Shown: positions 326 to 18,971, counted from the first letter of the whole stretch. The stretch is 63,072 bases of DNA, filler included, from Octopus bimaculoides (GCF_001194135.2; 4 parts of 4 records of this genome joined end to end with filler, not necessarily neighbours in it); one strand, 5' to 3'. Numbers and translations: made by a program. The notes: generated from the sequence alone by a model not told the origin.

Positions 326-758
326 CATATTACGCACAGACATACAGATATATTTATGCCCCATTATGGAATATACATCACTAAGCCCCCAATATTCTTC
401 GCTTCACTGCAAACGACAGACATATTTAACCGCTTGTAACACACTGTTTAATGATGTAATTACTTAATTACTGATCAAGCAACATCTTTAGTCATTTGTC
501 ATTTTCTTGGAAAGAATTATGTCTCTTTTGATTTTTCTTTTAGAAAAAGTTGAATTTAATTTAATCAAAACATTTCACAAACATCAAAACATGTCCACTA
601 CTTAATTACCGGATATTTTTGTAAACTGCAGTCTTATTAAAACAACGATCCGTCTCGACAACAAGTGCAGGAAATTATAAATCAAAGTAGATGAAGTTAA
701 GAAGGAAATTCACAATTTGCACACCACTGTAGTTGTATTATTTAGTAAGGCGTTAAGG

Positions 759-1140
759 TGGAGGCGCAATGGCCCAGTGGTTAGGGCAGCGGACACGTGG
801 TCGTAAGATCGTGGTTTCGATTCCCAGACCGGGCGTTGTGAGTTTTTATTGAGCAAAAACACCTAAAGTTCCACGAGGCTCCTGCAGGGGATGGTGGCGA
901 ACCCTGCTGTCCTCTTCCACCACAACTTTCTCTTACTTCCTGTTTCTGTTGTGCCTGTAATTCAAATGGTCAGCCTTGTCACATTGTGTCACGCTGAATA
1001 TCCCCGAGAACTACGTTAAGGGTACACGTGTCTGTGGAGTGCTCAGCCACTTGCACGTTAATTTCACGAGCAGGCTGTTCCGTTGATCAGATCAACTGGA
1101 ACCCTCGACACCGTAAGCGACGGAGTGCCAACAACAACAA
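759..1140 (+). mobile_element. tRNA-derived SINE family A, full length, with 13-bp TSD
   Basis: A box TGGCCCAGTGG, B box GGTTTCGATTCCC, (CAA)n tail. TAAGGCGTTAAGG at 746-758 and 1141-1153. Close inverted copy at 3803-4184. Confidence 0.9.
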
Positions 1141-1148
1141 TAAGGCGT

Positions 1149-1320
1149 TAAGGCTTCGAGCTGGCGGAATCGTTAACACGCCGGCTAAAATGCTTAGCAA
1201 CATTTCGTCCGTTTTTACATTCTGAGTTCAAATTCCGCCGAGGTCGATTTTACCTTTCATTTTTTCGAGGTCGATGAAATATATATCAGTCGAGCACTGG
1301 AGTCGATGTTATCGAGTGGT
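1149..1320 (+). mobile_element. SINE family C (GGCGAGCTGGCAGAA...GAGTTCAAATTCCGCCGAGGTCGAC)
   Basis: Matches more than 10 other copies in the window; Pol III A/B-box-like motifs. Confidence 0.8.
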
Positions 1321-1898
1321 TTCTTTTCTCAAAAATGTCATAAATCGAGCCTATAGTAGAAAGGGTTATTGAAGACGTTAAATAAAACAAGGTGGAGATT
1401 ATGATGGAAACTAGTGAGCACCAATTCGTTGTTATTACCGTTGCTGTACTCGTTGCTTAATCACGTGTCTGCCTTCATTGAACAGGCTTATGATTAAGGG
1501 ATCAAAACCACTCCAGCAGTGACCATCCTGATATTTATTTAGAGGAACATTATTGAATGTATCCCGCTTCTTGAAAGTCAGTCGGGTGTAATTTGCGAGA
1601 GATATGATTGCTGTTTCTAGCTGCATGGGTGTCCGTATGGAGCAGGAGTGGAGAACATTTCAGTACCAAAGACGAAATGAAAGTGTGTAGGAACTTGAGA
1701 AAAAAGAATGAATCTGATTTTACAACAAAACAACGAAAGAACTTTTTCTCTCTTCCTGATGAACAATTTTTTGCGGAATCTCCTCTCTCAACGGTGTAGA
1801 ACTTAAGAAACTTTAAACTTCACCGATTAACACAATTTTACCAACGCAGACTACCGTCAGTTTCTCTAAAATGTTGTTTGTTCCTTTTATACATACAT

Positions 1899-1931
<33 letters not shown>

Positions 1932-2000
1932 TACATACATACATACATACATACATACATACATGCATGCATGCATACATACATACATACATACATACAT

Positions 2001-2205
2001 AGATCGCTGACCACTACATTAAAATTTTTTTCTCCGTGTTTTTCTCCTTGTTTTTCTCCTTGTTTTTCTCCTTATTTCTTTCTGTTGAAGAGCGTAGCTC
2101 GAAACGTTAAAGACTTTCTCTATTCCCGAGCATTAAACTAATACATCCTTTTGTTGTTTACACCACTTGTCCTCGTCTGTTGTTGTTTTTTTCGTAAATT
2201 CTCCC
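2001..2205 (+). mobile_element. Short PLE-pLTR-like element (family Y) with hammerhead-like motif, embedded in (TACA)n
   Basis: CTGTTGA-A-GAGC GTA GCTC-GAAA CG TT at 2082-2108. Homologous copy at ~27660-27816. Confidence 0.6.
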
Positions 2206-2248
2206 ATACATACATACATACATACATACATACATACATACATACATA

Positions 2249-3757
2249 CAAGAAGGATACATTGATAATGTTGCTCTAAATAAAAATTCTCACGAGATAT
2301 AGGAATGGAGTTTGGGCAAGTCAACCGAAAAAAGATTGTCGACCAGACAGATAACATGTACATCAACGGTTTGCCTATCTCCTCTAATCTCTAATGATGA
2401 AAGCTACAAGTTCTTCGGAATCGATATGAATGTTGCATACGTTGGTTGCTTTCATTAAAGCCAGAATAACAAAAGAGCACTTCTGTAGACTTCGGAAAAT
2501 ATAGAATTCAGAGTTGTCTGTATTTAACAAGACCATATCTCACAATGCTTTTGCAGTGCCAGTGCTAGTACCAACATTTGGGATATTGGACTGGGCACTC
2601 GATGAAATACGCAGCCTGGACATCAAAACAGGAAAGGTACTGACTACCACTGGCGACTTTCACATTAATAGGGACTCTGGTAGGATTTATGTGAAACAAA
2701 ATGATGGCGATAGAGGTATAAAGTCTGTCCAAACAGACTTTGAATGTCGCATTGCATCACTCAGACAACACCTGATGAACAGTAAATAAAGAAACGTGTA
2801 CATTCCGTGCTTACTCAAAAGTGAGAACAACATCTTCGGAGTTGGAGAAGAACTACTGTACAGATACTCTGAGTATACAACCGTCTCATGCGACACAATG
2901 AAGGCTGGTCTGGTCTACCTAAACAGAAGCTTGGAGGAGAAGCAGACATCATATTAGCAAAAAGCAGTGCATGGGTACTTATATACCGTAAGCTAGAGAA
3001 CAACAAAATAATTGACAGGAAGAGTTGCCTCTCCTGGACCTATGCTAGATATATTACGTCTCACCTAGGAGGATATGCCTTCGCTATTCAGGAACGAGAG
3101 ATAGCTGGTAAATACCTGATAAACAAAAGGGTCAAATATTATACCAAATCTCCACATTGTGATAAAAAATGTCGGCTCAATTATACCAGTCTGGATGATA
3201 TCACTCACATCCTCAGTAGCTGTCTCAAAATATCTACGATATACTACATAACAAACCTGGTATTGTTTTCTGGGACAGGGAACAAAAGTCATGCACCGTT
3301 GTAGAGGTCAGCTGTCCTGCGGATGTGAATGTATAATCAAATGTCCAGGGAAAAGAGAACATTTATGGCGAATTAATGCGGAACATACAGTTCTTGTACC
3401 CGATGAATTCTCATTTGTACCTCTGATCATAGGTGCATTAGGTTATGTACCAACAAATTTGTACAAAAATCATGAAATATTCAGTTTCACAGAGTAAGAG
3501 CTAGTAAAACTGACGCAGAATCTCCAAATCCGATCTATTACTAGCACAGTGAAGATTTGTAAGACATTCCAAAAATTCTCCATGTGAGATGCTTATGTGA
3601 ATAGATACACGCATTTGTGTGTATACATCAGCGGTTCAACCAACCCAAACACATTTCTACAAACACCGGGAAATCTCTCAACTAAGAAAGTCTTGTCGCT
3701 TTGTTAGCGACTGACTCGAACTCTCTCAAGAAGACCTTAAAACTCAGAGAATCGTAC
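2249..3757 (+). mobile_element. 5'-truncated, decayed R4/Dong-clade RLE non-LTR retrotransposon (RT C-term, CCHC knuckle, RLE)
   Basis: Frameshifted motifs: FSRDIGMEFG; DESYKFFGID; HNAFAVPVLVPTFGILDW..EIRSLDIKT; CRL..SLDDITHILSSC; NKPGIVFWDREQKSCTVVEVSCPADVNV; IIGALGYV; VKICKTFQKF*. (TACA)n on both sides. Confidence 0.85.
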
Positions 3758-3802
3758 GTACATACATACATACATACATGCATACATACATGCATACATG
3801 CA

Positions 3803-4184
3803 TGTTGGCACTCCGTCGCTTACGACGTCGAGGGTTCCAGTTGATCCGATCAACGGAACAGCCTGCTCGTGAAATTAACGTGCAAGTGGCTGCGCACTCC
3901 ACAGACACGTGTACCCTTAACGTAGTTCTCGGGGATATTCAGCGTGACACAGTGTGACAAGGCTGACCCTTTGAATTACAGGCACAACAGAAACAGGAAG
4001 TAAGAGTGAGAGAAAGTTGTGGTGAAAGAATACAGCAGGGTTCGCCACCATCCCCTGCCGGAGGCTCGTGGAGCTTTAGGTGTTTTCGCTCAATAAACAC
4101 TCACAACGCCCGGTCTGGGAATCGAAACCGCGATCCTATGACCGCGAGTCCGCTGCCCTAACCACTGGGTCGTCGCGCCTCCAC
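3803..4184 (-). mobile_element. tRNA-derived SINE family A copy inside a (TACA)n tract
   Basis: Reverse complement of 759-1140 at high identity. Confidence 0.9.
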
Positions 4185-5149
4185 TACATACATACATACA
4201 TACATACATACATACATACATACATACATACATACTTATATTGATAAATAAATTAGTTAAAAGTAGTATCTTGATCCGAGAAACACAGTTCTGCAATCTC
4301 TCTCTGGACAAGCGGCACAAATGATTTGTTTCTGGTGATCAAATGTTTGTGCTGTGCAGCAGTTCATTCCTTCTATCAAATAGACGTTGCCTGTAAAAGT
4401 GCACGGTGTGTCACATGTCAAGTGTCGAAGTGATCGGAGAGCAACGTAAGATGACGTGTGTTGCTTAAGAACACAGGTACACACACAAATTCATATATAC
4501 ACACATACACACACACATTATGGTACATTTTTAGTTCTGAGTTCTTAGTTTGAGCTATGAGCTGCTCACATGATCGTTGCAAGCCCTCGGAGACCAGCCA
4601 GAAAAATAAAACAATTTAGCAATTCACAAAGACAAATGAATGACGACAAGAATAAGCATACATGCTGAAGGGAATTTCTGAGGGGTAATGACTTTGTTCT
4701 CCACTTCTAAGAAGGAAGACAATGGTTTGGGTAGAATAGTTATTAGAGGCTGTAGGAGGTGAGGTACAGTCGGAGGAAACGCAAGAAGGAAAGCCAGCTG
4801 TGCCTGGGAGGGGAAGCAACATGTTTTAGGAAGACAAAAATATCAATGAGAACGTTTAAGAGTAAATAGGTCAATGACCTTATGTATGTCTCGCTTACTT
4901 GGGTATATGCTTAGATATTAGAGCATAGCACCGCTGTATACTCAACTACGTGTCAATGACATGCCGAGCCAACGTGTGAGTCATATAAGGTGGTTGTAAG
5001 ATCTACTGGAGATAGCAACCACATCGTCCTCAAAACATACTCTATGTATGTATGAATGTATGTATGTATGTATGTATGTATGTATGTATGTATGTATGTA
5101 TGTTTGTATGTATGTATTATGTTTGTATGTATGTATGTATGCATGTATG

Positions 5150-5183
<34 letters not shown>

Positions 5184-5221
5184 TGTATGTATGTATGTAT
5201 GTATATGTGCATGCTTGTATA

Positions 5222-5653
5222 TATGTCATTATTCAGTTTATTTCAAGATTTCTTGCCAATAAAGAACTGGTTTCTAACCTAGATCCAAGGCTTCTTCATT
5301 GGAATTTCAACGTCAGCAACAAGGTATGTATGTATGTATGTATGTATGTATGTATGTCCAGATTTGTATGTTTTATGTATGTATTCTCATGCATATAGTT
5401 GCATAAATAGATATGTTCATATATATCTGGAAAGTTTTACAGATCTTTACAGTTCCAGTGATGGATTGGATCTGTAGTCTTCGAATTAGCTTTTGCCTTT
5501 CTGGTTCTGAGAAGCCTAATTTATCAAGATTGATATTTAGGCAGTGTGTTACATATCCCAGGACCCCAATAATTACAGGTATAAACCTGAACTTGTAATA
5601 TGGATAGAGTAACTGCAGATTTCCCAATAGTTCAGCATAGGTGTTCTCTTTTT
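5222..5653 (-). mobile_element. 3' fragment of R4/Dong-clade RLE retrotransposon (subfamily 2)
   Basis: ORF 5373-5627 reads LQLLYPYYKFRFIPVIIGVLGYV...LQIQSITGTVKICKTF. 3'UTR has an internal (TACA)n. (ATGT)n on both flanks. Confidence 0.85.
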
Positions 5654-5841
5654 ATGTATGTATGTATGTAAGTATGTATGTATGTATGTATGTATGTATG
5701 TATGTATGTATGTATGTATGTGTCTGTCTGTCTATCTGTTTGTCTATCTGTCTGTCTGTCTGTCTGTATGTCTATCTATCTATCTGTTTTTGTCTATTTC
5801 ATTCAACCACTCAGTCACTCACTAACTCATTCTCTCTCTCA

Positions 5842-5889
<48 letters not shown>

Positions 5890-6118
5890 GCACACACATT
5901 TACATATCTGTGTCTGTGAAAGTACATGTGTATTGTTTGCGCGTGTGCGTGCGTATGTATATATGCACAAATACAGGTCTGTATAAGGGTGTGTGTGGAT
6001 TTATGTACATATATACGGCTGTCTATGTGTGTATGTTTATAAAGCGTTACGAAAATAACATAGCTACATAATCTACATGCCTACCTACATAGCTATCTGC
6101 CTGTCTGTTTCCCTCTCT

Positions 6119-6186
<68 letters not shown>

Positions 6187-6194
6187 CCTACCTA

Positions 6195-6244
<50 letters not shown>

Positions 6245-6265
6245 GGTCTGTCTGTCTGTCTGTCT
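5654..6265. repeat. Compound microsatellite cluster: (ATGT)n, (GTCT)n, (CA)n, (CT)n, (ATCT)n
   Basis: Read directly. Confidence 0.95.
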
Positions 6266-6528
6266 TGACTACTATGGGGCAGACAGATAGCAGCCTACCC
6301 ATTCCTGTCATGTCATGTGTGAATATAGTCAACTATTTAACCCTAAACCAAAAACAAATCAGCCATTATTCAGATATCTTCAATATCTCTTCATTTAGTT
6401 ATTGAAAATATCTGAATAAATTTATCTCCTCATTTAGTTAAATTATTTATGTGCAACGAAGACAAAACCACCATGTGTTTAAATATTTTACGTACTTATC
6501 CATGCATGTATAGATACACGTGTGTGCG

Positions 6529-6568
<40 letters not shown>

Positions 6569-7047
6569 GTCACACACAAACGCACATTTTGATAAAGATA
6601 GTTTTTTGATAAAAATAAATGAGTATTGTACGTTTTCTTTTTCATGACTGTGTACCTACTTTTGCCACACCACATATGTATATATATATATTTTTCTCGT
6701 CTGGCCGTAAAGCCTTTTCTGTTTGTTTTCCTGTCTTGTTTTTTGTCCGCCACTACATTCCTCCATGGCTAGATTTAATTTGCGTATACAAATTTAATCT
6801 GCGATCCATGGGACGAGCCGTTTTAACGATGCGTCCTGCCCGAAGCTCGTCGAAACGCCGGTGTTAAAACGTGGGTAGCTGATGAAGTAGAATGTTCTCT
6901 ATGTGGCTCGTGTGTTCTCGTCTACGTTTGTTTGCAATGTCCTGTACCCAGATATGCACCTATACATACAGGTGGATGTCGGTATGCACATACCTGTACG
7001 TATATATGCATATACTCATTTACTATTTGTTTAAATATATATATATA

Positions 7048-7121
<74 letters not shown>

Positions 7122-8222
7122 TGTTGTTTGTATTGTTTTCAATTTGGGTCTTTCGTTGTTCGAAAGAATAGTTCATGTTCCATGTACTTGTACTTCGTAT
7201 TTTTTGTTGTACACGTATCGTGACGTCCTGTGCCCACATATGCATACATGTTTTGCACGCACTTCTTCACCTCTCCAGTTCGTGCTTCACAGCGTTCAAT
7301 ACACACACACTTCTCCACGTCTGGCTGTACAGCCTTTTTGTTTGTTTATTTCACCGTTTCGTTTTCCTGTCTTGTTTTCCNNNNNNNNNNNNNNNNNNNN
7401 NNNNNNNNNNNNNNNNNNNNNNNNNNNNNNNNNNNNNNNNNNNNNNNNNNNNNNNNNNNNNNNNNNNNNNNNNNNNNNNNNNNNNNNNNNNNNNNNNNNN
7501 NNNNNNNNNNNNNNNNNNNNNNNNNNNNNNNNNNNNNNNNNNNNNNNNNNNNNNNNNNNNNNNNNNNNNNNNNNNNNNNNNNNNNNNNNNNNNNNNNNNN
7601 NNNNNNNNNNNNNNNNNNNNNNNNNNNNNNNNNNNNNNNNNNNNNNNNNNNNNNNNNNNNNNNNNNNNNNNNNNNNNNNNNNNNNNNNNNNNNNNNNNNN
7701 NNNNNNNNNNNNNNNNNNNATATATATATACACGCACACACACATATACATACATACGTAGATACATATTTGAAATATTTTAATACACTGGTGCAGTAGT
7801 ATTTGCTTTATACTCACTGCTGCTAGCTCGCCTTTGCACTGGTTGGGGAAACTGCTTAGCATGTAAAACTTCTTTGCCAGTACCCAGCTTCTCTCCTTCA
7901 CCTAGACTCCTGCCAAGCCTCGCCGCAGTTTCAGACAGTAACTGGGTTCTTTGCAGCATCATGCTATCTTAGCAAGGGATCTTGGCGGAAACAGTGGCCT
8001 CTAGAGATACAGTGCGCACGCCTACACTGCTGGATTCAACCTGATGTTTACTAATTAGTGCATTAGTACCCAGTGAATAAATCCTTCAAAACAAAGGCTT
8101 ATGGGAGTAAATAATTTGTTGCAGTCAGCTTTTAGGTAGTTTCCCAGAGAAACTGCATCCTCCAACTGCAGCCTCCTGCCGTTGGGTGGCGCTAGCAGTC
8201 GTTTATCTTTTATAATCTATCG

Positions 8223-8838
8223 TTTACTCATTTCAGTCATTGGAGTGCGGCCATGCTGGGGCACTGCTTTAAAGGGTTTTAGCAGAACAAATTATTCCCC
8301 GTCTCCTTGCAGTATTAATTTTTAAAGTTTGGTACTTATTCTGTTGTTTTTTTTTTTTACCGAACCGCTAATTCAGTGGACGTAAACAAATCGGTGCCAT
8401 TGTCAAGCGGTGAGTGCGGACAAAGAAAGACACACGCACGTGCATATGCACACGTAAGCACATACACAAACTCACGCGTACATATACGAGGAGGGTTGGT
8501 GCTGCAAAGTGCTTGGCTTTAAGGATATCGCGAAAGGTCTGGCTGGAGGTCCAACCTTCCGAGGTTTTTTACAGGGCTTAGAAAAACTGAAGGATCACTG
8601 CAATTAGTGTGTGAATCTGAGACAGGCACATATTAAATAAAATCACAATTAACCGGTCCACCTATATTTTCTTTTTTCCAAAGCCAGGAACTTTTTCAGC
8701 ACTCCCTCATACGACGGTCTTCTTTCAGTTTCCGCTACCAGTTCCACTTACAAGGCCTTGGTCGGCTTAGGGTTGTAGTAGTAGACCCATTTTCGACGTA
8801 GTGGGACTGAACCTGAAACCATGTAGTTAGGAATCAAA
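8223..8838 (-). mobile_element. SINE family B, interrupted by a mariner MITE
   Basis: Both halves of the family-B consensus flank the MITE at 8485-8711. Confidence 0.75.
8485..8711 (+). mobile_element. Mariner MITE, same family as 27-244
   Basis: TACGAGG...GTGCTGCAAAGTGCTTGGCTTT and AAAGCCAGGAACTTTTTCAGCACTCCCTCATA ends; colinear interior. Confidence 0.8.
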
Positions 8839-9007
8839 CTTCTAACTTCTAACGACACAGTTATTATTATTAAATCTGTTTCCTTCTAGATAGCGACAAC
8901 AGGAAGTGAGCACTCCCATTATCATAATAAAGTTTTATTGCACAGGCATTTTCACCGGCAAGATAGACGATTGATGTTGGATAACTAACGGTGATGGCAG
9001 TTCTTAT

Positions 9008-9237
9008 TTCTTTATTGCCCACAAGGGGCTAAACATAGAGGGGACAAACAAGGACAGACAAAGGGATTAAGTCAATTACATCGACCCAGTGCGTAACTGG
9101 TACTTAATTTATCGACCCCCGAAAGGATGAAAGGCAAAGTCGACCTCGGCGGAATTTGAACTCAGAACGTAACGGCAGACGAAATACCACCAAGCATTTC
9201 GCCCGGCGTGCTAACGATTCTGCCAACTCACCGCCTC
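9008..9237 (-). mobile_element. SINE family C, long-tail variant
   Basis: Highly similar to 18972-19192 and to the reverse complement of 41189-41400. Confidence 0.85.
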
Positions 9238-9701
9238 CTTGATGATAGTTCTGGAAGTGATGGAATTTTCCTTGTGAGATATTTACGAGTNNNNNNNNNN
9301 NNNNNNNNNNNNNNNNNNNNNNNNNNNNNNNNNNNNNNNNNNNNNNNNNNNNNNNNNNNNNNNNNNNNNNNNNNNNNNNNNNNNNNNNNNNNNNNNNNNN
9401 NNNNNNNNNNNNNNNNNNNNNNNNNNNNNNNNNNNNNNNGGAAACGGCGCCTATCAGGGAATTCCATATAGCGATCATAAAATCAAAAATAGCATACCAC
9501 TCAATCTTGTCACGTGGGGAACAGGGACACTGCTTGATGTCAGCAACTTAACAAACTCAAGTGAGAAACGCTCAGAATCCCTTTTTAATACCCAATTGAT
9601 GCAACAGAATAGTCACATGTCCCATCTACAATCGAAGTTGCACATCGAAGATCGGATTATACATTTGTCAAAGTACCCCACAACATGCACGCACGACCGC
9701 G

Positions 9702-9740
<39 letters not shown>

Positions 9741-9741
<1 letters not shown>

Positions 9742-10060
9742 TGGAGGTGCATTGTGGCTGAATGATTAAGAAGTTTGTTTTGCAGCCACGTTGTGTGGTA
9801 TCTGTTAAACTTTCTATGCTTTGGAACAACTTATACTATGTGAGTGTAATAACTGTATGGAAGCCTATCAAGTGGGTAGCACCTGTAATTTAAAGGCCCA
9901 GCCTTGGTCATATACTGCTTCACTTTTTATTACCCCAGAGAATTACATGAAGGGCACACATGTCAGTTGAATGCTTTGCTATTAACACATCGATTCAGAA
10001 GCAGATTGCTCAGTTGATCGAACAACTGAATCGTCGTCGATCAATGACGGAGATCCATCC
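9741..10060 (+). mobile_element. Old SINE sharing the family-A body
   Basis: Degenerate tRNA-like head plus CACCTGTAATTTAAAGGCCCAGCCTTG...GTTGATCGAACAACTG, similar to family A. Confidence 0.5.
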
Positions 10061-10404
10061 TCTTATCTCCAAAAAAAAACAAAACCTGTCGTTTTCTGTA
10101 ATGACCTATCGACTTTGGAGAATTCTTGATTCTTGTGATTATCTCCCCTTCTCAAATGGAACTGGTTTTAATCGCCAGTTGGCAATTATAATATATCTTC
10201 TAGAGGCAGAGATGCTTTTAATAAACCACGCATTTATGTTGTATGGTATTATATATAACTGCATTTGTCAATATTGTTCCAGTACTTGATTGGCCGCTCT
10301 GCTATTGCTCATAGTTCATTTTATTTACGCACACACACACACACTCACATATATAAGTCTCTGTTCGTGTGTGTCTGTTTGTGCCTGTGCGCGTGTGTGT
10401 ATGA

Positions 10405-10491
<87 letters not shown>

Positions 10492-11307
10492 TGTGTATAC
10501 AAATATATATCTACAGCATGTTAATACATTAATCCATATTAGAACAGCAGTTAGATAATGGTTTTAACATATAGATTTATACATTCATATACACACACGC
10601 ACTCATATATATGTATACATGAATATATATATATATATATACGTATATATACATACACACACACATACATATACACACATACATATACATACATACATAT
10701 ATGTATGCGTGTATGTATGTATATATGTATGTGTGTGTAGAAGTTTATACATTTGTATATGTATGCATCTGTTTGTATTGCAGACATAATAAATTCCTAT
10801 TGATATGTAGGATATATGTTAAGTTCTAGACTTAGAGTCTCTATATACCCCTTGAAATTAATGTGATTCTTTGATGTTAGGTATCTTGTATTTGAAATCA
10901 AACTGTCTCTATGAAGGTTTATACTCCTTAATCTCCATTCCTCAAATTCATTCAGAGATTTTTAAACACCGCCGTACATTTATTCATCTTTTATGTCAGC
11001 TCGTACGAATCTGTTTCCGTCGCTAATCGTTTTCTATGATATACTGTATATCTTTACTTAACTGACTGCAATATAAGCTTGTATGACTACATCTTTTTGC
11101 TCCTCTCTGCTCCTCTTTATTACTGTAGACATCATAAATACACTGATACAGGTTATGATACTATTAGTTTTATTATTTGTCTTCTGAAGATGTGAAACTT
11201 AGGACGGCTCAAACATAATTAATTATGTAATACACATAACTGAGGTCGTGAGCGGTAGGAAAGAATGAAATGAAATTAACCGATTGCTTCATTTACCAGT
11301 TAATCGT

Positions 11308-11353
<46 letters not shown>

Positions 11354-12110
11354 TGTATCTTTTACTTGTTTTAATCATTGGACTGCAGCCTTGAAGGGTT
11401 TAGTTGAACAAATTGACCCCAGTACATAGTTTTAAACTTGGTACTTATTTCACCGGTTCCTTATGCCGAACCGCTTGGTTTACGCGTGCACAAACTACAA
11501 ATATATACAAACGCATACACACNNNNNNNNNNNNNNNNNNNNNNNNNNNNNNNNNNNNNNNNNNNNNNNNNNNNNNNNNNNNNNNNNNNNNNNNNNNNNN
11601 NNNNNNNNNNNNNNNNNNNNNNNNNTTACACACACGCACACAGATAGGTAAATATATGTTTGTTTTCTGTTAAGTTATTTATAAAAACATTTCAATATTA
11701 AACTGAAGGATTACTCGATACTTTTTTTTTTTTTTAGAGAAGTTTATATTTGTTATGATTTACAAGGAAAATGTCGACAGTGACTGCGAAGTTACGAAAT
11801 CTGACGAAAGCGAGCAAACCGGGACTTCAAAGTCATTCTTGTATGTAAGCTGTGGTGAGACTGGCGATTGACAACATTTTTGTGAGTTGGCTATTTTGCG
11901 TATGCGTGTATGCCCTGCAACTACTCCATCGAAAGCAGACCTTACCTAAATGCTAACTGGTTTTATGTGGCGAGAAAAATCCTACAAGTCAGTGATGCTG
12001 AATGTCCACCTTCATCCATGTGGTGTTTATGCTGGTATTTTTCCGTATAACTGCTGTAATGACGTAGATTGATTATCTGGCGGCTTTTGCAGGCAATGTA
12101 GTTTTGTTGT

Positions 12111-12272
12111 TGTTGTGTCGACACCCCCAGGCGAAGAAGTAGGATCTCCCAAGACATAAATAAAGGTAGTCTGGCCGTGGTAGAGGTGTTGAGTAGCAGT
12201 CGAGTAGCAGTTGTGTAGCGGTTGAGTAGAGATCATCCGAAGGTGCTAGATAGCAGTAGCGTTGAGACATAA
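12111..12272 (-). repeat. Dispersed ~165-bp repeat with TGT...ACA ends (solo-LTR-like)
   Basis: Second copy at 54361-54531. Minus strand begins TGTCTCAA and ends CGACACA. Confidence 0.5.
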
Positions 12273-12734
12273 CAGTTGTACGAGCTACATGAAACGTACA
12301 TATTATGGAGGAGGGTCATTTACATAAATATTTCAAATAGATCAAGGTTGAACCAAATTTGCTGTGAAGAGAAATCGGCTTAAGGTTGGCAGAGCGTCGT
12401 TCAGTTAGCTAACTAACTGGTTACCAGAGGTTTCAGAGGGGATTTTATGCAATAAAAAGAGTAAGTGTTGCAATTTGATTACGTAATAGTTTGATGATAC
12501 ATCGTGTGAAGGTAAAGTGATGGATGGGTAAAGGTTGTATTTAGAGGTTTGTACGAGGTTAACAGAGCTTAAAGTATTAGTATATCAATCAGAGAAACGG
12601 GTACATATTGGTACGAACTGTTAAACACGGTTCTAGAATGCAAAAGACTCGGCGGCCTGTGCATCAAGAACATTGGTGTTAAAGAATTGTAAGAGCCATG
12701 AAGAATCACTTCAGAGAAGGGTTATATGAGAGAT

Positions 12735-12800
<66 letters not shown>

Positions 12801-12976
12801 GGAAGCAGGAATGTTTCAATGCACGATGTTTGGGGGCGGTGGGATTGATGCGTGGTAGACATAACAGATTTGAGGCAATAAGGAAGAGTAATTGAAATCT
12901 TTAATATTTGATATCCAGAAGGAAGAAGTGAGTGGTGGGAGAGTAGATTCTGCATATGTTCAGATATATATCCATA

Positions 12977-13033
<57 letters not shown>

Positions 13034-13589
13034 CTGCCTACCTATCTACCTCCGCTTTCGTGTGTATGTACGTATACAGTCGATATGAAATGCGAACGTG
13101 TTTTCGTGTGGTTTTTAGCAGCAGGGGTTTATTGGTTGTAAAAAAAAAACCTGAACACTTCATAAACTTAAAAATAACCAAAGAAAAATCAGTTTCATAC
13201 AAAAAAGGAAGTTCTACTGTCTATACCAAGTGTTACAGGGATATACGATACACGATATCGAAATCTAAATTTCCACCTTATTTCCTGTAACACTAATCTG
13301 TACAGTTATAATATCATTTACATTTGTGAACAGAAATCTCATTAGAAAGATGAATTTTTCAGTTTTGTATGAAACTGATTTCTCGCAGGTTATTTTCAGT
13401 TGATTCAAACATTCTGTGGGGTATTTATGTTCAGCTCCAAAGAAACTCAATACTAACCAAGGTTTGTGTTTGACATTAAAAAAAAGCATGCGCACTCACG
13501 CCCACAGACATACATGTGTATGTATGTATGTATGTATGTATGTATGTATGTATGTATGTATGTATATATGCATGCATGTATGTATGTAT

Positions 13590-14141
13590 ATATGTCATTA
13601 TTCCGTTTATTTCAAGATTTCTTGCCAATAGAGAAAGAACCGGTTTCTAACGCAGATCCAAGGCTCCTTCATTGGAATTTCAACTTCAACAACAGGGTAT
13701 TTTTGTATTATGTATGTATGTATGTATGTATGTATGTATGTATGTATGTATGTATGTATGTATGTATGTATGTGCAGTTTTGTGTGTTTTATGTATGTAT
13801 ATAGTTGCATATCTAGACATGCTCATATATATTTAAATGATAAACTTCTGGAAAGTTTTGCAGATTTTTACAGTTCCAGTAATGGATTGGATCTGTAGTC
13901 TTTGAATTAGCTTTCTCCTTTCTAGATTTGAGAAGCTTAATTTCTCAAGATTGGTGTTTAGGCAGTTTGTTACATATCCCAAGACCCCAATAATTACAGG
14001 TATAAACCTAAACTTGTAATCTGGATAGAGTAGCTGCAGATTTCTCAATAGTTCGGCATAGGTGTCTTCTTTTTTACTGATCTTCAGTTTTATGTTAACG
14101 TCCGCTAGGCAGCTAATTTCCACAACTGTGCACAGTTTCTC
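13590..14141 (-). mobile_element. 3' fragment of R4/Dong-clade RLE retrotransposon (subfamily 2)
   Basis: ORF 13833-14252 reads KLCTVVEISCLADVNIKLKISKKEDTYAELLRNLQLLYPDYKFRFIPVIIGVLG...TGTVKICKTFQKFII*. (ATGT)n on both flanks. Confidence 0.88.
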
Positions 14142-14210
14142 ATGTATGTATGTATGTATGTATGTATGTATGTATGTATGTATGTATGTATGTATGTATG
14201 TATGTATGCA

Positions 14211-14249
<39 letters not shown>

Positions 14250-14602
14250 CACGGAATTTTGTCAACGAACAGGTTGCGGTTTCACAGCGACGAAAATATT
14301 TTGACAAATTAAATTTGAATGTTGCAGTGATTCTAACCGTTTTGTGTGTGTGTGTATGTTCTTTTTAAATGGCTTATAAACACCTTCCACGCTGCAATTG
14401 TTTTTGTCTCAGCACACAATCTCAGATTAGGCCACTTGCTATGCAAGTACATATCCGTAATATATATATATATGTATGTATANNNNNNNNNNNNNNNNNN
14501 NNNNNNNNNNNNNNNNNNNNNNNNNNNNNNNNNNNNNNNNNNNNNNNNNNNNNNNNNNNNNNNNNNNNNNNNNNNNNNNNNNNNNNNNNNNNNNNNNNNN
14601 NN

Positions 14603-14651
<49 letters not shown>

Positions 14652-14860
14652 AATGGGGATCAAATAAATCCAGGTGAATACCTCTTTAAGCACTCTGTGG
14701 AAACATAACCCTATTAACTAAATTGTCTCCTTAGTATTACGGCAATCCGTATTTGTCGTTATATTTTCTTCTAAGAGTTACAATTAGTAAATCCGAGGTA
14801 GGACACTAATTATCTTAAGTGTATTAATCACAGAATATATTAGAAGAAAAACACGGGAAA

Positions 14861-15323
14861 TGAAGATGCATCAGCAACGATTTATTTAGCTTATACGTGT
14901 TTCGAATAGCCTGGCAAAATGCAAGCGTTGCACATTGCCGTGTGCATATTTAATTGATCATTTAAATCGCCAGAAATACAGACCAGGAGCTGTCGAGCTA
15001 TTGTTTTCAAAGCCAGAATGCTTTTGCCAAATTTTGTATTCATTGAGATAATGTGGAAACGGATTTTACAAGTAATATACACTAGACTGTGGCTTCCATT
15101 TTATTGTTCATTGCTTATTTTTTTATAGTAAAAAGAGGTTTACAAAATTTGGGAGATGCAGTTTCGGCTTTGAAAAGCATAGCTTGGTAGCTGTATTTCT
15201 GGCAATTTAATCGAATAAATAAATGATCGATTAGATATGCATAATGCAACGCGCAGCGCTTGTATTGTGCCAAGCTATCCGAAACGGCTGTAAGGTAAAT
15301 AAACCTTTGATAATGCATTTTCA
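14861..15323. repeat. Foldback: ~180-bp diverged inverted arms with ~100-bp spacer
   Basis: Paired blocks: CCAAATTTTGTA/TACAAAATTTGG; GCCAGAAATACAG/CTGTATTTCTGGC; TGCATATTTAATTGATCATTTA/TAAATGATCGATTAGATATGCA. Confidence 0.85.
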
Positions 15324-15469
15324 ACTTTCGTTTACCCTTTTTTTATTTTGAAATTTGAACAAATTTTGCCTGTTTTTCAGTCGTATGACGATGGAGAGTC
15401 AAGTAGAGAAAAAAAGAAAAGAAAAACGAACGGTTTTATCTGACAACCCAATATCATACTAGCGTGTAA

Positions 15470-15680
15470 GACGGCGAGCTGGCAGAATTGTTAGCACGCC
15501 GGGTAAAATACTATCGGCATTTGTCCCTCTTTAGGTTCTGAGTTCAAATTCCGCCGAGATTAACTTCTTATTTTATCCTTTCGGGGTCGATAAAATAAGT
15601 GCTAGTTGAGTATTGGTGCCGATGTAATCGACTTACCTCTTCACCGAAATTGCTGGCTTTGTTCTAGAATTAGAAACCAA
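15470..15680 (+). mobile_element. SINE family C
   Basis: Colinear with the other family-C copies. Confidence 0.8.
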
Positions 15681-17115
15681 TATTTCACTAATGGGAACAA
15701 TAAATATACTGTTAGTGCTTGAAAAAGGGAAAAGGGCTATATTGGGTTCCCTACCTTTTCTAGCTTTAAAGTTACAGCGCATCCAGATTGGAAGCCCTGG
15801 ATCTATTGATATTTCACACCTTTTGTTCTTTTTCGAACTTAACTTCGAACTTAATGAATTGATTTTTAAAAGTTTAGATTTATTTTTTCATTGATTCATT
15901 TTTGAAATTTTTAAATATATTTTTTACCAAGCCTAAATGAATGTGTACATTTACGAAAATCTATAGAGGTGTTATCTGTTTTCGGAATAGTTTAGTGTAT
16001 TCAGGGCAAAAGATAATCACTGTTTTGCGGAGTTATCTTTGGAGCACGGAGTTAGAACAGTTATTAGATACAGTATTTGTCGGCGTATATGGGGCGCTTT
16101 TTTTTTTATTTAAATGTATCGAAATGTTGCCCTGGGTCTAATGCATCCGTATTAAGGATTGGAAAATGTGTTTTGTACGTGGCCTTAGGGAGCCTGATAA
16201 GTATAAATCTTCCAGGCCAAATAATTGTTACTAATAATAGAATATTGAAAACAAGCTAAATTATCTCAGTCTGTTAGCATAAACTTACGAAAAGTTGCTT
16301 ACATTACACTGGCAGTTATGTAGGAAGGTCACATAATTTCATCATACTCCCTTCCCCAGTGTACATAACTCACAGCTGATATATGTCCTACATTATTTAA
16401 TGACTGTTATATTTAAGAAAACATTTTTCTAATATAATGAAAATTCTCCTTGAAAGATGATTGGAATAATGAACTTTCATCCATCGATTAGCTATTTGCA
16501 ATGAATGGATGACAACAAAATCATAGCTGAGGTGAGCCCCACTGGTGTCTGATTGCAGTAACACTAAACATTATTACCAAAAATACAAGTTTTACATCCT
16601 ATATAGCGTTTCTCTTAACCAATATATAAACAACTATACAATTGATCTGAAAGAAGATAAAGTCGAAATATGGTACTTGTATAACTTGTATACTGTATAC
16701 TTGTATACTGTATACTTGTATACTGTCGCAATGTTGTATTTACATGCGCAGAATCATATACTCCCTACCGTCTACAAAAAAACTTTAAAATATCTTTTAA
16801 ATGTATGATGAAATAGTAATTTTTTTATTTTCACAAAATATTCTTGGAAAATCAGAATGAGTCTTGTGCTGGAGTGCATCTTATACGCCGGCAAATGTGG
16901 TGGCTTACTATAAGCATCTACAGTAGCGAAGATAGAAAAAAAGATATGCACATATGTTTCTACACAATAGAACGTGAAAGGCATTCGCTGTGGGATTTTG
17001 TTACGGAAAATTTCATGCTATATATGTAAAAAGACTGAGCTTCAAAAAACGTCATCGAACTACCAGGCAAGGTACTCTGGAAGTGATCTTACCTCCTCAG
17101 TTATACATATGTATA

Positions 17116-17215
17116 NNNNNNNNNNNNNNNNNNNNNNNNNNNNNNNNNNNNNNNNNNNNTTAATTAATTAANNNNNNNNNNNNNNNNNNNNNNNNNNNNN
17201 NNNNNNNNNNNNNNN
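17116..17215. other. Artificial scaffold spacer N44-TTAATTAATTAA-N44
   Basis: Identical 100-bp construct at 38670-38769 and 57101-57200. Confidence 0.95.
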
Positions 17216-17245
17216 TAAAAATATTCATATATATATATATATATA

Positions 17246-17584
17246 ACGTTGACCACTAACGTGGACAATCAATGTGCTAGAAATAGATCACACCTTGTGT
17301 CTATTAAGACCTAAATTGTTCTCAACATGAAATATAGCGGAATACCAAAACGTAAGCGGGCAAGACATTTAAAATCACCGAAAAAAAACACATCATTAAA
17401 CAGAGACCGGTTTCGGATTTAACGAATCTTACCGATTGTCTATTCCTCTTCAGCCTGATTTGTAATGTAACCGCAATCATCAGAATCGTATACAAAGTTG
17501 CCCACCGCCATAGGTGCGCGTGTATATGGTTCTGCTAATTACAGCTTAATGGTAAAATTCAAAGTCCACGTTAGTGGTCAACGT
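17246..17584 (-). mobile_element. 339-bp element with perfect 21-bp terminal inverted repeats, TA-flanked, carrying a hammerhead ribozyme
   Basis: ACGTTGACCACTAACGTGGAC (17246-17266) and GTCCACGTTAGTGGTCAACGT (17564-17584). Confidence 0.85.
17398..17461 (-). ncRNA. Type I hammerhead ribozyme (PLE/retrozyme-type, palindromic stem III)
   Basis: Minus strand: AAATCAGG-CTGAAGA-GGA(ATAGAC AATC GGTAA GATT CGTTAAA)TCC-GAAA C CG G T C|TCTGTTT. Full CUGANGA/GAAA/GUC core and stems I, II and III. Predicted cleavage between 17405 and 17404. Confidence 0.8.
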
Positions 17585-18414
17585 TATATATAAAAATGTA
17601 CTATATATATACATAGATAGATAGATAAATAGATAGATAGATAGATTCTCATGAATTAAACATAATACATACTGTTATATGATCATGTATATCTGAAGAT
17701 GAATATGTATTTATGATAGATAAAGTAGCTTCTGGTGTGGAGTTCACACTTGAATAAGCTGTAAAATTCTGAAAAATTGTTTTACTTCACTTTCGACGCT
17801 AATGCTCTCTCGGGAGCAACAGACATCTAATCCCTTTATATGGTCATATTCTCATGGTATCCATAAAAGCAGGAGAACAGGATATTACATTAATCAAATC
17901 CATTAAAATAAATACATAACGAGATTTCTGCTTTCCTAAACGTTTCCCTTGTGTGAACAAGCTTTGCTTGAATTATCAAAATGGAATTGATGGTTTCAAT
18001 TCTGCGTGTCTGCAAGCATTTTAGGAAAACTGAGTTCGTGACCAGCATGATGATAAACGGGTAGATTTAATAATCTACCGACTTAAAAATGTTTCTGTTT
18101 CTAAATATTAATATTCTAGGTATTTTAACGCTCCGTAAACATTAAGGAACTTATCACCAGCTAGTGGTTGAGATGTACAAGTCATTTTGAAGGAGGTATC
18201 GATATCTCACCATATTGTTTCCCATATTGTTATGCGGCATAAAACGAAAAAAGGGAGAGAAAAGGATCAATTAGAAATTTCTACACTGGTCACAATATAA
18301 TAGTTCAGTGAATGAGACCGTTTTTAATAATTCCAAGAGTTAAATTATGCTAAACGTAAAGTAACAATAAAGTAAAAAGATATTAGTTCGTGATATATAT
18401 TTACTTTCAAATTC

Positions 18415-18615
18415 TCGCACAAGGCCAGCAATTTCGGACGAGTGGGTAAGTCGATTACATCAACCCCGCAAGTACTCAATTGGTCCTTATTTTATCGATC
18501 TCGAACGGATGAAAGGCAAGGTCGACCTTGACGGAATTTTTACTCCGTAAAGACGGACGAAATGCCGCTAAGCATTTCTACCGGCGTACAAGCGATTCGG
18601 CCAACTCGCCGCATT
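18415..18615 (-). mobile_element. SINE family C
   Basis: Colinear with the other family-C copies. Confidence 0.75.
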
Positions 18616-18971
18616 AGTTGATGGTGTAAATTACGACGTTTGGGGGGAAAACTCCGAATATTTAAGCTGTATTAGTGTCATTGCAAGCCGAAAGTTTATC
18701 AATGGAATCACAAAAGATTTTAAATATTCTTGTAAGGGAAAAGGAAATGTTAAAAAAATAATATATTCCATATGTACCTGCATCATCTCTACGAAATGTA
18801 AAAAGTAAGATATAATAAATTAGCCGAAAGTATTTCCCTTTTGTGACAGGAAAAGTAGTCAAATTAGGATAAGATGAAAAAATAAAATAGCTGGAGACTG
18901 GTAGCTTTTTTTATATTTGTCAAGTACGAAAGAAAGCTGAAAAAAGCTTCACTCTATAGATACCACCTTCT

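Follow-up and report, generated by a model that had tools for sequence, protein, structure and literature searches.

A lineage of RLE-encoding LINEs that probably targets (TACA)n microsatellites in a single orientation

In a 63,072-nt joined stretch of Octopus bimaculoides DNA (GCF_001194135.2), hereafter the window, we characterized three remnants of long interspersed nuclear elements (LINEs) encoding a restriction-like endonuclease (RLE), each bordered by microsatellites of the tetranucleotide TACA. The three pieces are dead, 5′-truncated copies that represent two families of one RLE-encoding LINE lineage. Their junctions, and those of relatives sampled without regard to flanking sequence, make us fairly confident that (TACA)n microsatellites are the specific target of this lineage and that it enters them in one orientation only; by its domains it belongs to the R2 group, and we propose target-primed reverse transcription as the mechanism. 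A first-pass annotation of the window had already described three 5′-truncated RLE-type copies, each with (TACA)n on its sense strand at both ends; both descriptions hold, with the boundaries refined as listed below. Positions are counted on the whole window, tandem tracts were called by Tandem Repeats Finder, and coding remnants were found by six-frame translation. The relevant features, including the open reading frame (ORF), reverse transcriptase (RT) and 3′ untranslated region (3′UTR) landmarks and one short interspersed nuclear element (SINE)-like insertion, are the following.

1889-2001, plus strand: (ATAC/TACA)n tract upstream of a 203-bp insert at 2002-2204, with unit and strand as in 2205-2250
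2205-2250, plus strand: 5′ flank of copy 1, a perfect (TACA)n tract of 11.5 units; the junction reads ...catacataca followed directly by AGAAGGATAC
2251-3757, plus strand: copy 1, a 5′-truncated, decayed RLE LINE that begins just past the RT YxDD box and runs through the 3′UTR
2305-2391, plus strand: post-YxDD motif of copy 1
3170-3223, plus strand: CCHC motif of copy 1, second Cys lost
3250-3333, plus strand: RLE motif of copy 1 (PD..D..K type), PD mutated to PG
3414-3461, plus strand: 'IIGALG' of copy 1
3584, plus strand: end of the copy 1 ORF
3689-3716, plus strand: stem-loop of copy 1, GUC-UU-GUCGCU-UUGUU-AGCGAC-U-GAC
3755-3803, plus strand: 3′ (TACA)n tail and target tract of copy 1, interrupted by a SINE and resuming at 4185-4235
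4185-4235, plus strand: continuation of this (TACA)n tract beyond the SINE, perfect, 12.8 units
5043-5226, minus strand: 3′ (TACA)n tail and target tract of copy 2, imperfect beside the element
5227-5652, minus strand: copy 2, comprising the final ~80 codons of the RLE ORF, still in an open frame, the 3′UTR, an internal (TACA)n tract and a ~100-bp terminal module
5324-5384, minus strand: internal (TACA)n of copy 2, in the 3′UTR and followed by the ~100-bp 3′ module
5653-5721, minus strand: 5′ (TACA)n flank of copy 2, reading (TATG)n on the plus strand
13517-13595, minus strand: 3′ (TACA)n tail and target tract of copy 3
13596-14141, minus strand: copy 3, comprising the final ~100 codons of the RLE ORF, still in an open frame, the 3′UTR, an internal (TACA)n tract and the terminal module
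13638-13665, minus strand: stem-loop of copy 3
13704-13773, minus strand: internal (TACA)n of copy 3, at the same 3′UTR position as in copy 2
14142-14245, minus strand: 5′ (TACA)n flank of copy 3; the junction reads ...catacatacat followed directly by GAGAAACTGTG

The coding remnants were anchored on a 743-residue relative, P0002. Copy 1 matches its residues 247-743 in three frames (expect value, E, 2.6e-61), copy 2 residues 665-743 and copy 3 residues 643-743; the three copies thus have three different 5′ truncation points, as the first-pass annotation had proposed. The coding pieces of copy 1 are spread over three frames and carry several stops, and the open frame of copy 3 begins immediately past the PD motif. 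A stitched copy 1 peptide returned 25 protein matches, the best at E 2e-109 with 40% identity and several with the RT domain RVT_1, while the copy 3 peptide matches O. vulgaris and O. bimaculoides proteins at 80-84% identity. These homologies came from phmmer-type searches; the stitched window peptides gave no significant Pfam match because the copies are too decayed.

TACA-family tracts directly abut both ends of all three copies, always on the sense strand of the element; in the 3′ tracts of copies 2 and 3 the first ~25-30 bases are imperfect. The probability that a random end in the window falls within 8 bp of a same-strand tract is 0.007, and 2e-4 for both ends of one copy. As both ends were flanked in three of three copies, chance does not account for the arrangement. 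No copy is touched by an assembly gap and no claim made here needs continuity across one: those at 7381-7719, 9291-9439 and 11523-11625 come no closer than 1.7 kb to any copy, and a further gap (14483-14602) starts 238 bases past the end (14245) of the copy 3 outer tract. The spacing of copies 2 and 3 spans gaps, so their true distance is not fixed by the coordinates.

The surroundings of copy 1 look like a single former tract, 1889-4235, that received copy 1, a SINE and a 203-bp piece; the segment at 1889-2001 is probably the outer part of the original tract that took in copy 1. The SINE-like repeat, ~380 bp long, occurs twice in the window in inverted orientation (758-1133, plus strand, and 3803-4184, minus strand; 92.7% identical). 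Its 5′ end is tRNA-like in appearance, and ARAGORN calls no tRNA in it. The second copy (3803/3804-4184, minus strand) lies within the (TACA)n 3′ of copy 1, and its own tail meets the repeat in the opposite sense. The 203-bp piece (2002-2204) has (TACA)n on either side and holds a 12-bp minisatellite, (TTTTTCTCCTTG)4, at 2027-2077. It matches neither the LINE copies, nor the 3′ hairpin model described below, nor any fetched locus, and may be another passenger of the copy 1 tract.

Loci of relatives, on five large contigs and on contigs from metagenomes, were retrieved with protein similarity as the only criterion, which leaves the sample blind to flanking sequence. The most informative family comprises five copies (L003-L007) on the five large contigs, L003-L006 from one assembly and L007 from a second. 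All five end in ...AAATATTTACAA directly followed by (ACAT)n, and all five have sense-strand (TACA)n directly at either end. L003 and L006 are full-length and share a 5′ terminus; the truncation point differs between L004, L005 and L007, which gives four 5′ ends in all. No other TACA tract was found in the ~85 kb of flanks of these five loci. Two full-length elements on metagenome contigs (L014 and L017), each from a different divergent subclade, are preceded by (CATA)n and followed by (ACAT)n, and L002 has a (CATA)10 tail. In the TACA-type families, every visible 5′ junction shows same-strand (TACA)n, for full-length and truncated elements alike. The presence of (TACA)n at both ends whatever the truncation point, in loci sampled blind to their flanks, supports target choice; the first-pass annotation had read the 5′ tracts at variable truncation points in this way, and the additional families bear it out.

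Sister families differ in their repeat. L001, L009, L011, L012, L013, L016 and L018 are associated with (TTAC)n, the same repeat as (CTTA)n or (TACT)n, which differs from TACA by one base per unit. L012, of the TACT type, and L007, of the TACA type, share one assembly, which indicates that the repeat is inherited with the family and does not reflect the genome background. A rough neighbour-joining tree, drawn with no bootstrap support, places each target type in more than one subclade, which suggests repeated target switching. A broader reading of these data would describe a hitherto undescribed multi-genome RLE LINE clade in which each family is strict for one strand of a TACW repeat, (TACA)n or (TACT)n, and in which a single-base change of the unit switched the specificity on more than one occasion; we hold this only tentatively and think it less likely than not to stand in full.

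Two further observations concern arrays and repeat turnover. L012 contains, at 7562-18646, a head-to-tail array of three (CTTA)n-type copies, one full-length and two 5′-truncated, with (ACTG)n tracts between the copies and (CTTA)n/(TACT)n at the array bounds; either repeated insertion of the element into its own tail or RT jumping between templates could have produced it. Within or continuous with (CATA)n, (CCAT)n tracts occur in L007 (11813-11960) and L008 (10080-10140), which suggests that one repeat type becomes another by point mutation followed by expansion.

How many independent events the window holds depends on copies 2 and 3. A BLASTN comparison of copy 1 with the other two copies returned nothing at E 1e-3; a loose MAFFT alignment is possible and the peptides are recognisably related. 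The first-pass annotation spoke of two subfamilies; judged by these comparisons, two families fits better. That annotation had also cautioned that copies 2 and 3 might derive from one local segmental duplication, which would reduce the window to two independent observations. The two are indeed alike in architecture, down to the position of the internal (TACA)n. They are, however, only 80% identical at the DNA level, copy 3 extends further 5′, and the similarity of the two loci ends at the outer microsatellites, with no shared unique flank beyond them. L008 of O. vulgaris, a non-orthologous third copy of the family that is 84.6% identical to copy 2, also holds an internal (TACA)n (about 10425-10475), again between the ORF and the terminal hairpin module, and the tract common to these three copies indicates that the source element of the family already carried it; the shared architecture was thus inherited. 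Copies 2 and 3 are independent insertions of one family, and we give the duplication account next to no weight. The internal tracts did not figure in the first-pass annotation. We considered whether the ~100-bp 3′ module is a separate small element lodged in the tail, and rejected this since the architecture is common to three independent copies. A copy truncated within the internal (TACA)n would resemble a 100-bp mini-element with TACA on both sides.

Two other explanations address the flanks themselves. The 3′ tract could be the slippage tail of the element, and the 5′ tract could be made during integration and not represent a pre-existing target. R2 reverse transcriptase is able to jump between templates, and template jumping would yield an array such as that of L012, where microsatellite separates three head-to-tail copies. 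Yet the 5′ tracts frequently exceed the 3′ tails in length (~500 against 124 bp in L006, 948 against 178 bp in L011), in L003-L006 the DNA preceding the 5′ tract is unrelated to the element, and the copy 1 tract also took in a SINE and another fragment, as a long pre-existing tract would; we regard synthesis of the 5′ tract at integration as improbable. The association might alternatively be passive, if near-random insertion, combined with survival or with dense microsatellites, left flanks that mirror an (ATGT)n background. The window is microsatellite-rich, with 3.8% of its bases in perfect TACA/TGTA tracts, but in all TACA-type copies seen the boundary between element and tract is exact and the strand of the tract never varies, with a both-end chance of only 2e-4 per copy in the window. 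Neither the ~85 kb of flanks of L003-L007, with no other TACA tract in them, nor the family-dependent repeats of L007 and L012 within one assembly would be expected from a background effect, and we consider this explanation very improbable. Insertion into pre-existing (TACA)n by target choice thus remains our preferred reading.

Given the decay of the window copies, the enzyme is best seen in its relatives. The near-intact L006 holds a single ORF of 1,169 codons with one in-frame stop and an RVT_1 domain (E 6e-24); intact ORFs of 1,130-1,164 amino acids occur in the same clusters, the clade ORF measures ~1,150 amino acids, and the member P0078 offers an intact ORF of 1,164. The best solved-structure matches of L006 are R2 proteins (9nl3, 9dou and 8gh6; E 1.8e-27). 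The residues FxDD, C-x2-C-x8-H-x4-C, PD, D and K are invariant across 15 full-length ORFs, and a CCHC motif is present in 19 of 19 such ORFs examined for it. The L006 ORF shows no match to Exo_endo_phos and hence no apurinic-like endonuclease (APE) domain, and the full-length ORFs show no N-terminal C2H2 zinc finger motif. With an RT domain, a CCHC motif and RLE, and a single ORF, the elements are, as judged from their encoded proteins, RLE-type LINEs of the R2 group; the CCHC and PD..D..K motifs, RVT_1 and the R2 structural matches uphold the RLE-type label of the first-pass annotation. The N terminus comprises a conserved domain of ~70 residues that is predicted to form a three-helix bundle with a core pLDDT of ~90. 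A distant RLE-LINE relative (P0061; 30% identity, 1,446 amino acids) combines an OTU-like cysteine protease (PF02338) with RVT_1.

A second conserved feature lies in the RNA. In nearly all families a small hairpin of the same fold is found ~40-70 nt upstream of the tail, composed of a 3-bp outer stem, a UU bulge, a 6-bp inner stem, a UUGUU-like loop and a C bulge. Across seven families, 98.4% of the cells are paired and eight of the nine pairs show compensatory changes on both sides; none of 500 shuffles reached the observed pairing, and slid controls gave 20-44%. As these segments were picked by eye, a covariance model (R1) was also built, from non-window families only. The top window match of model R1 is the copy 1 stem-loop (30.2 bits, E 1.3e-6) and the second-best is that of copy 3 (13.1 bits, E 0.14), in which two inner pairs are mismatched, as in copy 2 and L008, and the architecture is unchanged; the model also matches L001, L004-L007 and L018. 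In stringent-type LINEs such as eel UnaL2 and zebrafish L2, a conserved 3′UTR stem-loop precedes, by some tens of bases, a tail of short tandem repeats. Those elements are unlike the present ones in being of the APE-type L2 clade with no target specificity, and the resemblance is functional only.

Taken together, a model for integration can be proposed. By analogy with R2 and Dong, the ORF protein would bind its own RNA at the conserved 3′UTR stem-loop and recognise duplex (TACA)n, with the N-terminal three-helix domain and the CCHC/RLE region as candidate readers. The RLE would then nick the (TGTA)n strand, the (UACA)n tail of the RNA would pair with the nicked strand, and the freed 3′ OH would prime reverse transcription. 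Early stops of reverse transcription would yield the variable 5′ truncations, and each insertion would split one tract in two and add tail units. Under this scheme the repeat lies on both sides of every copy because the nick falls within the repeat, and target-primed reverse transcription into the (TGTA)n strand would explain the strict orientation, the repeat on both sides and the splitting of tracts. We infer the identity of the nicked strand from this scheme; either the protein or the RNA tail may set the specificity, and by expanding the repeat through successive insertions the elements may feed the microsatellite load.

Several observations weigh against this interpretation. The octopus families themselves are represented by the three window copies and one O. 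vulgaris copy, and the evidence on the target tract comes from occupied sites only. L008 has only (CATA)3 at its 5′ junction, adjoining (CCAT)n, with no real 3′ tract; decay is a reasonable reading of these weak flanks, with L007 showing (CCAT)n arising inside (CATA)n. The 3′ tract of L001 is limited to two repeat units. L015, a 5′-truncated member of a (CTTA)n-type family, has (CTTA)7 at its 3′ end (4134-4161) and (ATA)17 at its 5′ junction (1-51). The N-terminal domain gave only Foldseek matches at E > 1 against the PDB (homeodomain and TnsB-like) and nothing in Pfam. Dong carries a tested 5′ ribozyme resembling that of hepatitis delta virus (HDV) (PMC3774820), whereas here the 5′ regions of seven full-length elements, scanned against Rfam with E-values, yielded no HDV-like ribozyme, a class that is poorly caught by sequence models.

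L015 is also the only mixed case seen, and its (ATA)n is equivalent to (TAA)n, the repeat classically targeted by Dong. Apart from spurious mir-297 and snoRNA matches to the microsatellite sequence, the Rfam ribozyme scans returned nothing. Sub-threshold mir-297 matches on the (TGTA)n strand occur in L014 (2-70), L017 (47-103 and 3876-3942) and L006 (7237-7301, minus strand), and constitute an annotation trap.

Among known systems, Dong, an R4-clade RLE LINE of Bombyx mori and its relatives, offers the closest parallel. It inserts into (TAA)n in insects, molluscs, cnidarians and an ostracod (PMC7998251, PMC3812793), and like the elements described here it is a single-ORF LINE with a C-terminal RLE that enters a microsatellite in one orientation and has the repeat on both sides (PMC3812793, PMC7998251). 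It likewise lacks N-terminal zinc fingers; the N terminus of R4/Dong elements is a diverged Myb/SANT-like domain (PMC7998251). Dong differs in targeting the trinucleotide (TAA)n, where the present families use the tetranucleotide (TACA)n and their sister families (TACT)n. These targets depart from both known ones, rDNA for R4 and (TAA)n for Dong, and keep the principle of targeting a microsatellite. The Dong-R4 class is reported to be the most abundant recently active class of RLE LINEs in O. vulgaris (PMC13282606), and among molluscs the R4-Dong type is almost exclusive to cephalopods (PMC10294476). With a single ORF, no N-terminal zinc finger and this abundance in octopus, assignment to the R4/Dong clade is plausible; membership of the present elements in HERO is possible. 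A relative found in the moth Loxostege (P0064; 28% identity; locus L010) shows no (TAA)n flank, the 3′ end of that element not being definable; a CTTG/CATG-type repeat lies ~1.4 kb downstream of its ORF.

R2 has the same domain order of RT, CCHC and RLE and serves as the model for target-primed reverse transcription with protein on 3′UTR RNA; unlike the present elements, which enter a simple repeat, it bears N-terminal C2H2 zinc fingers and Myb and uses a single 28S site. Waldo, an APE-type element of the R1 clade, enters (ACAY)n, which includes (ACAT)n and thus (TACA)n (PMC3812793). Its endonuclease is N-terminal and apurinic-like, as opposed to the C-terminal RLE found here, and because its clade is unrelated the shared repeat class reflects convergence and not kinship; membership of our elements in Waldo or the R1 clade was ruled out, as an APE domain is absent and a C-terminal RLE present. 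Microsatellite specificity is also known from the LINEs Waldo, Mino, Kibi, Koshi, Togen and some HERO families (PMC3812793, PMC4640811), of which Togen (NeSL-related, (TG)n) and the HERO families are RLE LINEs that use other repeats (PMC4640811). Our literature search, which did not extend to Repbase Reports and much of the subscription literature, found no TACA- or TACT-specific RLE lineage. The finding is a new target for a known, Dong-type strategy and not a new kind of mobile element.

The window holds further repeats. A ~220-bp repeat at 25-243 and 8483-8709 (77.5% identical) looks, by eye, like the C terminus of a transposase of the mariner type. Another short SINE-like repeat occurs three times, at 1145-1315 (plus strand), 9068-9236 (minus strand) and 15462-15635 (plus strand), with 75-79% identity. 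The segment at 14861-15323 (~460 bp) is its own inverted repeat (65.6% over 491 bp) and could be a palindromic element or one resembling a miniature inverted-repeat transposable element.

For octopus genomes, these insertions offer a reason why (ATGT)n tracts are often fragmented and lie beside repeats, which is of relevance to cephalopod repeat annotation, assembly gaps and the design of microsatellite markers. Site-specific RLE LINEs, R2 in particular, are in development as gene-insertion tools, for which a change of target is an open question; the TACA/TACT clade is a natural experiment on such a change, with the 3′ hairpin and the small N-terminal domain as candidate determinants. Were the tentative reading of a TACW clade with flipping specificity true, the target may be read largely by the RNA repeat tail pairing with the nicked strand, and the clade would represent a naturally re-targetable insertion system that is partly RNA-guided.

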